Shown: piece after piece, positions 10,977 through 18,785 of the stretch
How positions within the stretch are numbered: the stretch's first letter is position 1
How the letters are laid out: the number at the start of each line of letters is the position of its first letter
DNA from: Oikopleura dioica
Taxonomy: Eukaryota; Animalia; Chordata
Reading direction: 5' to 3'
DNA length: 64,000 nucleotides
Assembly: GCA_907165135.1 (NCBI GenBank)
Contig: OU015568.1
Coordinates: forward strand, 8,308,001 to 8,372,000
The notes under the pieces: generated by a model
Databases searched by the model: none
What the model saw: only the letters and a program-made list of their open reading frames with translations
What the model was told of the DNA's origin: nothing
Made by a program: the position numbers and the translations under genes

Positions 10977-12043
10977 TCACAATATTTTATAAACAGCGTT
11001 TAATATCATAAGACTTCCAATCGGAAGATACATTTTTCTTCCTCCAGACTTCAAGACAGGCAATAGCTGTCTATCTTTCGTAGCAACGGCCAGATGGTAA
11101 ACAACTTCTTGGATCCAGTCTCGATATGCAGAAACTCTCGTGTAAACTCCCGGTTTTCCCGCGTCCCCACAAAGACGTCCTCCAAACGAAACGACTCCAG
11201 CGAGCAAAATCTTGTTTTCAACGTAGCAATAAAAAGGACCACCACTGTCGCCCTAAATTATTGTTAAAAAACGAGCGTCAAAGGGAAATGACCATGCAAC
11301 TGTCGCCATGAAGCTCTCCATCTGATTCTTTTCCAATCGCGCAAATTTGAGATTGAGTGTCGATTTGAGGCCATGCTCGTTTGCAAACGTTGTTTTCAAG
11401 AATTGTTAGGGGTACTTTATGCAGTGTTTCAGGCCTAGAACAAAGACATCTACGGTCAAATGTCTTAGAGAAACCTTGTTCTTTGATTATCAATCAATCC
11501 CCAGCCAGCAGCAAAGCATCTTTCCCAAGGCAAATGCTTCTCTCTCGGAAGCATAATAAACTCTTGAATCGTCGCAGTAGAATTGATCTCAAGCTGCAGA
11601 ATCGCCAAGTCGTCGAAAACTCGTTTCATCTGAAATCCAGGAAAGACGAAAATCTTCTCAATTCGAAATCGCTGCATTGAGCGGCCGCGACTCTGAAAGA
11701 CGGAGCTTTGTGTGCTTCCTATGATGACGGAAATTGCATCCAACGAGACTAGAGACAGGTCAGCTTCTGGTTCTTGCATTTGAGCTTCGAAGTTTTGGGA
11801 GACGAAACAGTGGGCAGCTTGAAAAGATTCAAAATATTTGGCCATGGAAAACTAACCTGAAATGACAAACTGCGGCGAAATGAGAGTTCCACCACACAAG
11901 TCCGTCCCATAATGATGCATAATATTTATCTGAACGGCCCATGGAACATTTTCGATAGTTTCAGGAGAGCCTCCAACGATTCTCTCAATCTGCTCGCAAG
12001 AAATTTCATGAAAAAATAAGCAGAAAAAATACCTAAGCATCAT
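10977..12043 (-). CDS. Secreted trypsin-like serine protease (S1A)
   Basis: Signal peptide, activation site R/IVGG, AAHC, DDLAIL, GDSCM/GDSGGP (Asp at the S1 pocket position) and PGVYTRVS. The last exon boundary is not fully certain. Confidence 0.93.
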
Positions 12044-12816: not shown

Positions 12817-13311
12817 ATGAATTTGATCCCGACAATCGTCTTCATTTTCGCCACTTTTTGCGACGCCTTCCCAGCTTTCAACCGCGCCAACACCCGACCA
12901 GTCCAACTCTACGCCCGAACAGGCCACTTCATGGACGTCAACGCGAAGGGAAAAGTCCGGCAGACCCACAAGCACAACCGACTCACATCGCTTCTTCATC
13001 TTGAACCAGCAGGTCGCGGCCATCGAATTCTCCTCCGCGCTCTCGCTTCTGGAAAGTACCTGACCATTACTCGCCGAGGCCGCGTCAGGGGAACAACGAA
13101 GAGAAACGAAGCGACTGAGTTCGTCGAAGAGCGAATCAAGGCGAACAACTTCCTGTCCTTTGGCCTTCCAAACACGAACTGCAAACTGATGGTTTCTCAA
13201 CGCGGCTACGAAATTTCCTGCAACAACTCGCGAGCTCAACGGAACAAGATCTCCTTTCTTGCGATGAGAAGCCACTTGCCAAGAGCTCTTTACGATTCCT
13301 TGAATCTCTGA
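12817..13311 (+). CDS. FGF: Intronless fibroblast growth factor with predicted signal peptide (164 aa)
   Basis: Hydrophobic leader MNLIPTIVFIFATFCDA. FGF core motifs QLYARTGHFMDVNAKGKV, LRALASGKYLTITRRGRVRG and EFVEERIKANNFLSF. AATAAA at ~13368. Subfamily not assignable by eye. Confidence 0.88.
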   Translation: MNLIPTIVFIFATFCDAFPAFNRANTRPVQLYARTGHFMDVNAKGKVRQTHKHNRLTSLLHLEPAGRGHRILLRALASGKYLTITRRGRVRGTTKRNEATEFVEERIKANNFLSFGLPNTNCKLMVSQRGYEISCNNSRAQRNKISFLAMRSHLPRALYDSLNL

Positions 13312-13483: not shown

Positions 13484-13970
13484 TTCTCTAGATTTTTTGT
13501 TGATGTCAGGGCTCAAAGATTTCAAATGGTCAATCTGCGGGTTTACACAAGTCCGAAAGAGCGAAAATGAAGGTAAGACTCGAATTTAGAGATGATTTTC
13601 AAGAGAAAATACTTTTGAAACATTAAATTTTCAGAAAAATGTCAAGTCGCCGAAGAAAGGGCGACTTCAATGCGAGAAGGGACCCGAAAATGGGTCCTTG
13701 CGAGGTTGAGGGCGATGGCTGCACGATCAAGATGCCTTCGAAGGAGTTCCAGAGCACTTGCCTGGGTTTTCGTTTGGTACGATAACACGGAGCCTAATCC
13801 TATGACAGGAGCAAGTCAACCTTAATTTCGACGAAACCTCTTCCGCAAGAGTTATCGCAATAGCGAATCTCGAGAAAATTATTGACAATAAAAGTCTTAA
13901 AATGTAACAATTCTTGTGTCTTTTCTTTGCAGGATGTTAGCTTAGAAAAAAAGTGGTTCAATACAGTTGT
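13484..13970 (+). repeat. Dispersed paralogous segment, copy B (partner at 2540-3010)
   Basis: Same conserved blocks as copy A, in the opposite orientation. Confidence 0.75.
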
Positions 13971-14037
13971 ATTGAAGGTGAAGTTTCAGTCATCAGTAGA
14001 AAAAGAAACCTGCGCATTTACAAAAATTCTAACAAAG

Positions 14038-16241
14038 TCAATGGTGAAATTCGTCAGTTAGATAGATCATGTAAGCTTGAGGAAGAAGATACCATTTGTT
14101 CGCCTCCATATTAATATTTTCATTGACCAGCCGCATAGATTCGTTGTTGTCTCCGAAATAAACGAACTCACCCAAATTCTGATCGTACTGGTGCTTTATA
14201 AAATCGTATCGAGCATAGTATGCATCTCTCTTTTTGATTTTTAAAAGTGATCCGCCAGCGTTGAACTGGGTATTTTGGAGGATGTATTCGTCGTTTTCAA
14301 TTCTGTCAAGGACCATTTGATGAAAGAAAACTTCGCCATCATCAAGCAAATACGCGCCAGTTACAGTCAACGGGCGTTCAAATGAATAATTTTCGTGAAG
14401 AAAGACTAAAAGTTTTTCGAGATTATAATATTATGCATTCTTTGATAGCATTTTAATTTGCTTAATAAAATTAACCTTTTTTATAATAAAACTTGGACCA
14501 AGGAGCACCGTTATTGTATCCCCTCATAATGCGCCATCCACTTCTACGAACAAACGTTCTTTGCTCCATTCTTTTGAGGAGAGTTTCTATCTGGCTTTCT
14601 TGAAATTCGCATTCAAGTTTGTTTGGATTCAAGTCGAGCCCAGCCATGCTTCGAGGATAAAGAATCATTGTCAAAATATTGAAGACATTCTCAAAACTGT
14701 AAACACCTTTTTTGTCTTCAAAATTCAAATCGCTTTTGACTGCATGGCAGATAAGAGTAGCAACAGAAATCGGGACGCAAAGATTTGATTCTTTTTGGTC
14801 GAGGACGTTTCTTGTTAAATTTTGAAAACCCATATTGAGGCATCGAGTGATTTTTGGCTTCAGAAATGACATTTGAAGAGATTTGGTGAGATTTGGATCG
14901 TCCAAGCAAAAATCTGGCATCGCATCTGGTAAACAAATAATCTTCGAGATTCTCTTTATAGCGTAAATTCTTTCTGATGTAATAGGACACCCATAGAAAA
15001 TATTACGTGCATCGCACTTCTTTCTTAAATTTCAGAAATAAATTCTTTTCATCAATTTACCTCCAATAGGTCTTCAATCAGTCTCATTTCGGCTAAATCA
15101 AGAGGTCTATAAAGCAGTGTCCATGCAGTTTTCCATTCAGAAAGTATGAATACGAAAATATCTAAATAGTTTTCCATCATGTGATGGTCACTGACTTGAT
15201 CCATTGAAGAAAATGCAGGAGATCCGAAGTCTTAAAAATTATTATTTCACTTCATTATTAAATCCTACATGTCTGTCTATGTCCCCAGCTATGATCCCAC
15301 TTTGCTCCTCGTCGGACGTATCCCATCTCTCTGTAGCTCTCCCGTCGATTCATTGAGAAAAGAACACCAAAGTCAATTATTTTTGGCTCATCATTTAGCA
15401 TCAAAATATTTTCCGGCTTTAGATCCAAGTGATGGATTCCAATTTCAGTTAAATACTCGTATCCTTCCATCACTCCAATAGCAATTTTTTTCCTCTCAGC
15501 CAAGGTAAGCTCATTAGATTTCAGATGTGTTCTCAAATTCGTCTGACATCGTTCCATTATTGTGATCCATCCAAGACAATCTTCTTTCTCAACATCCAGT
15601 CCATCGAAAATTTCGATATTTGCAAGATTTGAAATCACGTTTTTATGAACTGGAATACGGTTACCCCCATGATCGGCGTGATTGAGCGTTTCTACGCCCT
15701 CGGCCTTTTTGTAATCTATTTCTTTTATTGCTTATTATGAGATAAGTATTTTACCGTTTGAAAGATTGATTCTAAGGCCGTATTTTTTGCTTATTCTTGA
15801 ATCGGTAAAGAGCGCCGAATCAAATGCTTGAATTCTAACAGCAACATCTAATCCTCCTATTTTTTGCTCCAATACAATCGCTTCTCCTCCAGCAGAAATA
15901 ATATTTCCCAAAGCACAGTTTTCCCAGCTCCCTCTTTCCTCTGCTAACTCGCTCCTTTCGATGGTCCTCCCGAGTAACTCTGGATTTTCCTCAAGAATTT
16001 TTCGCTGAGTAAAGCTCAAATTCCATTCTTCTTTGGCTCCATTTTGACAGAAAGATGTTCCTTTTCCACCCTCAAATATGACGCTAAACCAGTTTTGAGT
16101 CGGGAAATTCATCCTTTCCATCGATAGAAGAAGCCTGTCCCTATCATTTCTAGTTGTTTTTCGTTTCAATTTCGGTAAGAACTCATCAAGCCATATCCCA
16201 ATAACTTCTCTTGTTAAATTCCCTTGGCATTCAGTGTTCAT
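14038..16241 (-). CDS. Protein kinase-like domain fused to a C-terminal papain-fold cysteine-protease-like domain (671 aa, 5 exons)
   Basis: Exons 16241-15755, 15715-15269, 15230-15061, 15019-14476 and 14405-14038, joined by GT-AG introns of 39/38/41/70 nt, give one open frame of 2016 nt. Kinase motifs: SAGGEAIV, VAVR, HKNV, HHLDLKPEN, DFG. Protease motifs: DQKESNLC, RPLTV, FHQMV, YILQNT. Confidence 0.85.
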
Positions 16242-16383
16242 ACTTCTGTCAATTCAGTTTCTAAGGCCAAACTGACTACGTCTGACCATGCAAATCATCA
16301 ATCAAATATTGTCTTTAACATTAATGCACCAAAAATAAACAAAACAAGGTCTTTAGACACCTTTATTGAGTAAAAACAACATT

Positions 16384-18785
16384 TCAGTTAATAGACAGCA
16401 GTTGAATATCGCTCGTTAAATCATCTTCAGCTCGCAGAAACGCCGGCAATTCCTTTTATAAAATTAAATCAACCGGAAAAACATATTTTAGTAAACTTAT
16501 TTGATCAAATAATCAAAGTGGACGGTGAGGATAATTGTGACAGAATCAAGAGTGGTGCGTTTTACATTACCTACCAAATTTGCTTTATCCAGCATGCCTC
16601 GTTGATTCTCAATCCGGCCACGTGATACAAGTAATTCTGCCAAAGAAATATCTTTTAGGACTTTCGATTCGTTCGTTTTTCAAGTCAAATTTAAAGTTGA
16701 AAAATTGAATAATCCTTTCCTTCTGAGCTTCTACTATTGGAACACCTTGTAACTGAAGATATTCTTACTGTATTTGTTTCTATATCTGATTGTTGCTCAG
16801 AAACTGAGTCTTTTTCGAAAATAAAAGAGCCGTTTCTTGAGCCATTCCTGCTACGACTTGACTTGTTTGAAGAGGCTTTCCATTGTCGTCCGTGATTTTC
16901 AACTGATCGAGTAATAATCCGACTGAAGTTCTGTGTCATTAATGATCTCAGTGAGAGATTCTTTGATTCCGAGCGCAAGTGCGCCGAACGACTTGCCTTG
17001 AAGTTTTTGGAGGACGTGCTGGATTACTTGGGATAAAATCTTATGCGGCTTGGCGCGCACTTCGATCATCTCCGATTCAAACAACACCTTATTATAGATT
17101 AGGACAATTGAACCTTTCAAAAGCGCAAGGATCCGAATTGCAGCAAGAAACAAGCAACAAGAGCCCCTTCCAAAAGTTCTGAACTAGAAATCGAATTGAT
17201 CAATTTCGAGTCGAAAACTTAAGGGGGGTCTCTGCTTATCGTTTATATTAAAAACTTCAGAAACTTACTTTTAAATTGACTCTCACTTCTCCAAAGACCT
17301 TGGCCCCGGCAAGAGTAGCAGTGCTCAATTGAAGCCAGTTCGCTGATAAAACATCTGTTCGGATGGAAGCGACAGAAAGTGACCACTGAACAGAGCAAGC
17401 TGGAGGCACATTTGAAAAGCACAAACGAAGAAGTGCATCAATTGTTCTAGTGTGACCGTCAGCTTCTATTGTGAATTCATCGCCGGTACTCAGCTGGACG
17501 TATACATGTGTTTCTGTCTATTTCAAGGATAATAATAGACCTCTATCAGTTCTATGAGAGACATAAATAAAGAACAAAACAATGAAAGAGATGTAAAAAT
17601 ACATTTTTAAAATTATCCTTGAGCGATTGACTACGAGCTACTTTTGAGCATTTTTCTTTCGATTCTTTGCCTAAATTTTTCATTATTATTTTTGGTGAGC
17701 TAAAAAAAGCTGAAACCTTTTGTAACATTCCGAATTAATTGAAGAGCGCTTCTTCTTCTTTTTGTCTTTTTTCGTATCGAAGCATCGCAAAAGGTGGAAT
17801 TTGAAGATCTTCGTCGATGCTCGAGGATTCGGAAGACTGTTTCTTGCTGTTTTATTGACTAGAATGGGAAGTTCTGAGGAGAATATAGAATTTTCACTTA
17901 CGGTCAGATTTTTGAAGGAACTGTCGAATATTTCGTTGTATAATGTTGACTTTTCATGGCTCGCAAAATTCAGCAAAAAGGACAAATATTCAAAATTCAA
18001 GTTTAATTGAGTCCGCTCCTTGAGAAATCGAGGATAAGAATCGTATCGCAGCATGTCCCTATTTCTAGTTTTTGAAGCTGAAATCATAGAAGAGAATTCT
18101 CTCAATTTAGTAGTTCCTTTTTGATGATTTGAAAGCTTCAGAACTAGTTCCTAATTGCGTCCTGTGCAGCGTCGAAGAGAGACGATTTGATTTCGCCGCG
18201 CTCAAAAGAACGGAAAATGCCAGTTTCGATTTCAGCCGACAGGTTCACCGGCGTTTCTGATTTATCGCCGATGAATCTGAGAATAACGTCCTCTGCTGAC
18301 TCTAAATGCAGGGCTCGTCGTTAACATTTCAAAAAGGAAAAACGCTGCCGAAGCGGCATTTTTGATTGATAAGGGATTTACTAGAGGGTCTTCCCAATCG
18401 ACTTACTTTTCTGCTCGACGAAATTCACTTGCTGCGAAAACCTTTTCGCTGCGAGAAGAAAATTCAAGTTCTCTGAAGCGAATTCATCTTGAAGAAAGGC
18501 AGCAAAGGCCAGTTTTCCAGCTGGATCTTCTATAAGATTCTCTAAGTTCTGCGACCAGCTCATTGTCTTTCTCGGAATGGCACAGGGCAAGGATCCACGA
18601 CGGCGACTGGTCGGGGTACTCGGTGCAGAACCGGATGATAAGTGGCGAGATTTGAAAGCTTCGACAAAGTCCGACACATCCCGCTGAGGTGTCAACGAAG
18701 GCGGGGTCACCAGGGATCGACGCCGATTGTGGCCAATCGACATCAATTTTGATACTTTTCTCGTTCCCTTCTCTCCTCCGATCAA
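16384..18785 (-). CDS. RGS12/14: RGS12/14-type regulator of G-protein signalling: RGS domain, two RBDs, GoLoco; 5' exons probably extend toward ~19750
   Basis: RGS: WSQNLENLIEDPAGKLAFAAFLQDEFASENLNFLLA...PVNLS...FDAAQ..I..ML..DSYPRFLK. RBD2: IEVRAKPHKILSQVIQHVLQK. GoLoco: RIENQRGMLDKANL/ELPAFLR. Confidence 0.88.

Follow-up and report, generated by a model that had tools for sequence, protein, structure and literature searches.

A divergent member of an Oikopleura dioica gene family probably joins a kinase-fold domain to a papain-fold domain in one protein

Introduction

The gene that runs along the minus strand from position 16241 to position 14038 of a 64,000-nucleotide stretch of Oikopleura dioica DNA (contig OU015568.1, positions 8,308,001 to 8,372,000; hereafter the window) raises the question of whether a single polypeptide of this animal combines a protein kinase fold with a papain-like cysteine protease, and whether this particular copy of the gene is intact. 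Both had been proposed in a preliminary description made from the sequence alone. The analysis presented here makes it probable that the locus is a real five-exon gene, intact in its open reading frame (ORF) but divergent, that it belongs to a large family seen so far only in Oikopleura, and that it would encode a single cytosolic protein composed of three parts: an N-terminal region of ~110 amino acids (aa), an atypical kinase-fold domain and a papain-fold domain of ~230 aa. The joining of a kinase-fold domain to a papain-fold domain with Gln, Cys, His and Asn in one chain is supported by the gene model, the relatives of the gene and the structural models described below.

Results

The minus-strand sequence of positions 13800-16500 was read for the building of the gene model, and all combinations of GT..AG introns of 35-130 nucleotides (nt) were enumerated between the ATG at 16241 and the stop codon at 14040-14038. 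The longest open reading obtained in this exhaustive search was a 671-aa protein encoded by five exons with short canonical introns, exactly as the preliminary description had predicted. All exons and introns lie on the minus strand. Exon 1 (16241-15755; aa 1-162 plus 1 nt) encodes the N-terminal region and the kinase N-lobe, exon 2 (15715-15269; aa 163-311) the kinase core and exon 3 (15230-15061; aa 312-368) the kinase C-lobe. Exon 4 (15019-14476; aa 369-549) covers the linker and the helical subdomain of the predicted papain-fold domain, and exon 5 (14405-14038; aa 550-671 plus the stop codon) covers its beta-sheet subdomain. The four GT-AG introns were 39 nt (intron 1, 15716-15754), 38 nt (intron 2, 15231-15268), 41 nt (intron 3, 15020-15060) and 70 nt (intron 4, 14406-14475) long. 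The frame was open across 2016 nt, with neither stops nor frameshifts. An alternative acceptor of intron 3, located 3 nt downstream, would give a 670-aa form.

An in-frame stop codon was found 15 nt upstream of the ATG. The window copy begins where the paralogues have LNEDER, and most paralogues begin 10-30 residues earlier (MLTEF...LAALT). By-eye inspection of positions 16242-16400 revealed no in-frame donor-acceptor pair for an extra upstream coding exon matching this paralogue start. The absence of a signal peptide and of a prodomain, also predicted earlier, was upheld: hydropathy analysis indicated no signal-peptide-like or transmembrane segment and no hydrophobic N-terminus in the window protein, and no prodomain match was obtained for it. 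Some of the paralogues carry a longer hydrophobic N-terminal stretch, ILAILATCIAGMIQIA.

Exon 2 alone matched the Pfam Pkinase family (PF00069) with an E value of 1.4e-13 (51.3 bits versus a cut-off of 31.7), and no Pfam match was obtained for exon 1 alone. The three motifs on which the kinase assignment had been based are all present in exon 2, i.e., HKNV, the catalytic loop HHLDLKPEN (aa 257-265; 15434-15408), which includes D260, K262 and N265, and DFG (aa 277-279; 15374-15366). Exon 1 contributes the glycine-rich loop ISAGGEA (aa 114-120) and the beta3 strand VAVRI, in which Arg136 (15836-15834) occupies the position of the kinase catalytic Lys. The kinase-fold domain of the preliminary description thus stood, with a substitution that had gone unnoticed there. 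Exon 3 encodes GSPAF as well as SEWKTAWTLLYRP, which is found where the paralogues have CDWKT; E replaces the conserved Asp of that motif in the window copy. The HxDxKxxN and DFG motifs were preserved in the window protein and across the paralogues, in a family that is non-RD. The kinase-fold domain may well still bind nucleotide, given how strictly the catalytic-loop and DFG residues are conserved. The closest solved kinases by sequence in PDB were TLK2, RIPK1, PknG and CDK7, and since all of these matched at ~1e-5, no kinase family could be named.

An AlphaFold model of the kinase part was obtained for the paralogue P0067 (residues 1-395; predicted local distance difference test (pLDDT) of 84, predicted template modelling score (pTM) of 0.84). 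In Foldseek it matched DAPK1, TTK, PKMYT1, PKR and IRAK4 with E values of 5e-7, and the VIA search returned SOBIR1 (Z 11.5) and IRAK1 (Z 11.4), followed by ties down to 9.5. The Oikopleura domain resembles eukaryotic protein kinases (SOBIR1, IRAK1/4, RIPK, DAPK1, TTK, PKR) in its Pkinase match, its HxDxKxxN and DFG motifs and the bilobal shape of the paralogue model, whereas it differs from them in the Arg that replaces the beta3 Lys, in being non-RD and in the lack of a helix at the alphaC position of the paralogue model. No single kinase family stands out as the nearest, as the Z scores of 9.5-11.5 are tied. Between beta3 (149-157) and beta4 (201-209) of the P0067 model, at the expected alphaC site, there are strands but no helix; this segment corresponds to aa 136-200 of the window protein (~15836-15605). 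No obvious conserved alphaC Glu was visible in the 18-member alignment. Ahead of the kinase N-lobe, both the alignment and the P0067 model have a conserved helical region at the N-terminus (FLPKL.R.STR.EKCRL).

The C-terminal part of the protein carries the four residues expected of a papain-like enzyme. Gln443 (14797-14795) and Cys449 (14779-14777) are encoded by exon 4 and lie six residues apart, and His578 (14322-14320) and Asn594 (14274-14272) are encoded by exon 5 and lie 16 residues apart; the codon positions and both spacings given in the preliminary description were therefore correct. Exon 5 also holds RPLTVTG and the terminal WYLLPQAY strand, and in the window copy the protein ends directly after the papain-fold domain; it carries no UBA tail and gave no match for an ankyrin-like region. 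Conservation of these residues among the paralogues had been chosen beforehand as a check that could overturn the assignment. Gln, Cys and His were invariant in all 20 complete C-terminal domains. Among the retrieved sequences, Cys was kept in 139 of 143 (replaced by Ser in three and by Arg in one) and His in 51 of 52. Asn was located at +15 to +18 from His in 59 of 65 motif matches; of the six misses, one was a spurious match and in two the Asn follows a longer insert, so that three are genuine exceptions and ~95% keep the Asn. Because the Gln/Cys/His/Asn pattern is kept in a family diverged to ~30% identity, we do not attribute it to chance. The four members that have lost the nucleophile Cys are P0003, P0038 and P0130 (Ser) and P0178 (Arg), and the family therefore includes dead or pseudo-enzyme copies. 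The C-terminal tail of P0003 (664 aa) is unrelated to that of the other members, which suggests a frame shift.

Profile searches gave little for this domain. A Pfam scan of 51 family members revealed no match to PF00112 and a single sub-threshold match of one member to PF03051 (0.0036), and the Peptidase C39 profiles PF03412 and PF13529 matched neither the window exons nor any of the 51 members. The sole match in a PDB profile search of the C-terminal domain was a chance one to EsaI (E = 0.077). An ESM-Atlas feature search with exon 4 returned sub-threshold leads only (0.75-0.77), which were not used as evidence; two of these leads were to the clan CA families PF09778 and PF12385.

The fold was modelled with AlphaFold2 for residues 85-380 of the paralogue P0100, which is 46% identical to the window protein across the C-terminal region, using an alignment of 51 rows that included exons 4 and 5 of the window copy. 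The mean pLDDT was 79, with most of the core residues 62-290 above 90. In the model, C66 opens the helix 66-81, which places the nucleophile at a helix N-terminus, H199 is found within the strand 196-207, and N215 comes just after the strand 210-214, the next strand of the hairpin. The Foldseek search of the model against PDB returned nothing significant (best E = 0.035), and its non-significant top rows were mostly C39 peptidases, staphopain, AvrPphB, cathepsin S and phytochelatin synthase, largely clan CA. In the VIA search, which is independent of Foldseek and covered 48,161 chains, all of the top 50 rows were papain-like enzymes. Xylellain, PCAT1-C39 and Der f 1 scored Z 9.5, and 18 chains reached a Z of at least 8. 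A second look with VIA gave ervatamin C at Z 10.0 (3.4 A across 155 residues) and the C39 domains of ComA and PCAT1 at 2.8-3.0 A across 126-128 residues; UfSP, ZUFSP and ATG4 were also listed (Z 6.6-7.6). Shape matches in ESM-Atlas were to C39 and C1 clusters, mostly C39, with template modelling scores of 0.38-0.44 by query and at most 0.59 by target. Several of the C1 alignments begin at residue Q60 of the model, placed opposite residue 19 of cathepsins S and K or residue 126 of pro-papain. By the standard papain numbering (Gln19, Cys25), the residue paired with Q60 is the oxyanion-hole Gln19. From the model, the C-terminal domain is predicted to have a papain (clan CA) fold, with a helical Cys-bearing subdomain and a beta-sheet His-bearing subdomain.

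A coincidental origin of the two spacings, in a domain that is not papain-like, would agree with the lack of a sequence-level match to any peptidase family and with the absence of a significant Foldseek hit. We regard it as very improbable, given that the residues are nearly invariant across so diverged a family, that the structural neighbours were uniformly papain-like and that several alignments start at the Gln.

When compared with known papain-like enzymes, the Oikopleura domain shares with family C1 (papain, ervatamin C, cathepsins S/K/B, Der f 1, xylellain) the two-subdomain fold, a Cys at the start of a helix with Gln six residues ahead of it, and the His and Asn 16 residues apart on a hairpin. 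It differs from C1 enzymes in that identity in the structural alignments is 8-16%, PF00112 is not matched, a signal peptide, a prodomain and a conserved disulphide pattern are all lacking, and the domain stands behind a kinase domain in a protein predicted to be cytosolic. With the C39 domains (PCAT1, ComA, LahT) it shares a compact papain-like core, in which 126-128 residues superpose at 2.8-3.0 A (Z 8.7-9.5), so that the C39 domain superposes almost whole on the P0100 model; both form part of a larger protein and are not produced as secreted zymogens. Unlike the C39 domains, the Oikopleura domain is ~100 residues larger, matches neither PF03412 nor PF13529, and is eukaryotic with a kinase as its partner, whereas the partner of C39 is an ABC transporter. 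The third residue is Asn, as in C1; that of C39 is Asp.

These comparisons bear on the kind of enzyme that the domain might be. It is possible, though we would not expect it, that the papain-fold domain is a specialised thiol enzyme and not a general endopeptidase, i.e., an isopeptidase for ubiquitin or ubiquitin-like proteins, a C39-like leader or Gly-Gly peptidase, an amidase or an acyltransferase. The best root-mean-square deviations were those of the C39 Gly-Gly leader peptidases, UfSP, ZUFSP and ATG4 were among the structural neighbours, and the predicted cytosolic protein lacks a signal peptide and a prodomain, like such enzymes. On the other hand, C1 endopeptidases scored equally or higher (Z 9.3-10.0), the third residue is of the C1 and not the C39 type, and no ubiquitin-binding element was found in the window copy. 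This possibility refines, rather than excludes, the explanation of the domain as a papain-fold peptidase.

The linker between the two domains contains the motif LDDPNLTKS (aa 407-415; 14905-14879, minus strand), with the family consensus FCLDDPNLTKSxQMSxLK, which is among the best-conserved stretches of the family. It lies in the low-confidence linker of the P0100 model (mean pLDDT of most blocks 36-53) and is predicted to be without structure. The motif is a candidate regulatory or processing site.

The unity of the gene can be seen in relatives that need no splicing model. P0057 (Tara Oceans contig L002) is a single uninterrupted 449-aa ORF that reaches from DFG across the entire C-terminal domain, and P0104 (JGI contig L001) is one ORF from CDWKTAW of the kinase C-lobe to the C-terminal WYLLPQAY strand. 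Because both are uninterrupted ORFs spanning both parts, the fusion is shown in these relatives independently of any intron prediction. A Pkinase ORF is found 82 nt upstream of P0104 on the same strand, and exon 3 matches the start of P0104. Two adjacent genes wrongly joined in our model would be compatible with the lack of transcript reads for the window copy (see below) and with the Bergen reference, where one paralogue (L003:2815-4932; O. dioica reference FN653015.1, 2271473-2280404) is annotated as a 343-aa kinase with the 297-aa P0110 placed 38 nt behind it. However, the split in the Bergen annotation is a one-base frame shift in the run ccccgg (~L003:3953-3963), within the conserved LLYRP segment, which ends the 343-aa model and is not a gene boundary. 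Both parts are held in a single ORF in P0057 and P0104, more than nine annotated paralogues are collinear over their full length, and intron 3, with only 41 nt, leaves no room for a terminator and a promoter. Two separate genes are thus highly unlikely. P0110 was rejected as a stand-alone peptidase gene, being part of a frameshift-split fusion, broken or mis-sequenced; the split paralogue of FN653015.1 would be either a pseudogene or an assembly error.

The gene belongs to a large family. A search of 1.84 billion representative proteins with exon 4 returned 62 relatives, and a search with P0003 returned 44 O. dioica paralogues of the full-length type (367-795 aa), which bear no other names than "unnamed protein product" and "protein kinase domain-containing protein". 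With a profile of the C-terminal domain, 229 proteins were retrieved; every named one was from O. dioica, the rest were short marine metagenome ORFs, and none of the 229 came from any other named organism. The most distant branches also hold O. dioica accessions (CBY31442.1, CBY24129.1). The authors of the preliminary description knew of no such architecture in other chordates, and the distribution of homologues is in line with this. Annotations of these genes go no further than "protein kinase domain-containing" or "uncharacterized", because none of the profile libraries tried recognises the peptidase domain.

The window protein aligns end to end with P0078, P0064, P0067 and P0076, with 43-47% identity across residues 11-668 (e.g., residues 17-668 with P0078 at 43% and residues 11-599 with P0067 at 47%). 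The alignment is collinear through the N-terminal region, the kinase, the LDDPNLTKS linker and the peptidase domain, and exon 1 is collinear with the N-termini of 17 paralogues. Neither the product of the window gene itself nor a close orthologue was present in the databases, where the best identities were 61%, for a fragment, and 47%, for a full-length match. In the maximum-likelihood tree, the window copy has a long branch to itself (1.24 changes per site) and falls within none of the young subfamilies that are well supported. No second copy was found in the window, as tblastn with the gene model matched the gene itself only.

Several observations weigh against the reading of the locus as a functional kinase-peptidase gene. 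At the protein level, the last ~270 aa (exons 4-5) had no match in Pfam, NCBIfam, PADLOC or the PDB sequences (phmmer). The model that matched papain-like folds was that of the paralogue P0100 and not of the window's own protein, so the clan CA fold expected for residues ~400-671 was matched in a relative rather than in those residues themselves. Unmatched models typically reach Z scores of 7-8, which the 9-10 obtained here exceeds only slightly, and the case for the papain fold is built not on the height of Z but on a hit list that is uniform throughout and on the alignment register. The beta3 Lys is Arg in all 18 aligned family members, including the window copy; such a change is a classic kinase-inactivating one, and kinase activity is therefore in doubt. 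At the level of this copy, no read lay fully on the gene in four RNA libraries of the same species label (three oligo-dT bulk and one single-cell) compared with positions 13900-16400 at a threshold of at least 90%, and 30 of the 174 near-invariant positions of the family were changed, mostly conservatively.

Partial reads matched only a 35-nt conserved stretch (15552-15587) encoding EDCLGWITIME, and their overhangs translated to peptides of the paralogues, for example EIFDSGDEE (P0071, P0079), IELFHKKDLK (P0075-77) and KCDGNLREK (P0070). Since the overhangs encode paralogue peptides, paralogues are transcribed. Cross-mapping of paralogue reads is a risk for expression estimates within this family. 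It may also be that the libraries were made from a different O. dioica lineage. The window copy keeps 144 of the 174 family columns that are at least 90% conserved (83%), and most paralogues keep 90-100%. The claim that the gene is intact accordingly held for the reading frame, and is qualified by the zero RNA reads on this copy and by the 17% of near-invariant positions that are changed.

It is rather unlikely, although less so than the alternatives dismissed above, that the window copy has fallen silent or is decaying, its frame open but its function lost, in a family that is functional as a whole. Such a fate would be consistent with the zero reads in libraries that did catch paralogue reads, with a retention of near-invariant columns worse than in most rows, with the long terminal branch and the lack of a close relative in any database searched, and with the E in place of the conserved Asp of CDWKT. 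It would have to be reconciled with the open frame and four canonical introns, with the catalytic-type residues of both domains, which are all kept, and with the conservative nature of most substitutions; the libraries may also represent another lineage or stages with the gene off. That 671 codons stay open although the terminal branch amounts to 1.24 changes per site argues for selection having acted on the frame.

The neighbouring genes were examined by their domains. An ORF of 164 aa with an FGF domain (PF00167, 1.1e-14) lies on the plus strand at 12817-13311 and converges with the kinase-peptidase gene, past whose 3' end it is found at a distance of ~730 nt. PMC11733497 deals with the FGFs of appendicularians. 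A trypsin-like exon (PF00089, 1.9e-6) is located at 11465-11845 and an exon with an RGS domain (PF00615, 8.9e-7) at 18381-18785, both on the minus strand. Judged by these matches, the flanking genes appear to be ordinary animal host genes. A viral origin of the kinase-peptidase gene was rejected, considering the ordinary animal neighbours, the genome-wide occurrence of the family and the papain-like order of Cys followed by His; proteases of the adenain type have the opposite order of these residues.

Discussion

Both folds that we assign to this protein are well known. What appears new is their fusion in one chain and the presence of dozens of copies in a chordate with a very compact genome. 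No description of a kinase-fold domain and a papain-fold peptidase in one chain was found in full-text searches of the literature. In the reading that we consider probable, the C-terminal domain would act as an active thiol peptidase or isopeptidase in the cytosol, and the kinase-fold domain would be a weak or unconventional kinase, or else a nucleotide-binding regulatory or scaffold module. The 'kinase-gated protease' mechanism and a role in immunity or cell death, both raised in the preliminary description, are speculation. The window copy adds one intact, deeply diverged member to the family and no new functional information.

A more far-reaching version sees the family as a cytosolic sensor-effector system that is specific to Oikopleura, diversifies rapidly and would serve immunity, cell death or genetic conflict, with the Arg-for-Lys kinase fold as the switch of the peptidase. 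We hold this to be improbable, more so than the silencing of the window copy. Under such a scheme, the attached peptidase would become active through the kinase-fold domain binding nucleotide or phosphorylating, and the LDDPNLTKS linker, strictly conserved though predicted to be disordered, might serve as a phospho-site, a pseudosubstrate or a self-cleavage site. If true, this would be a single-chain kinase-protease switch without a counterpart described in animals.

An expanded family with long branches, whose named members all come from O. dioica, fits the pattern of fast-evolving defence or conflict genes. To our knowledge, Oikopleura lacks many components of a vertebrate-type immune system. 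Should the peptidase be active, these proteins would represent a peptidase family and a signalling architecture that are both new.

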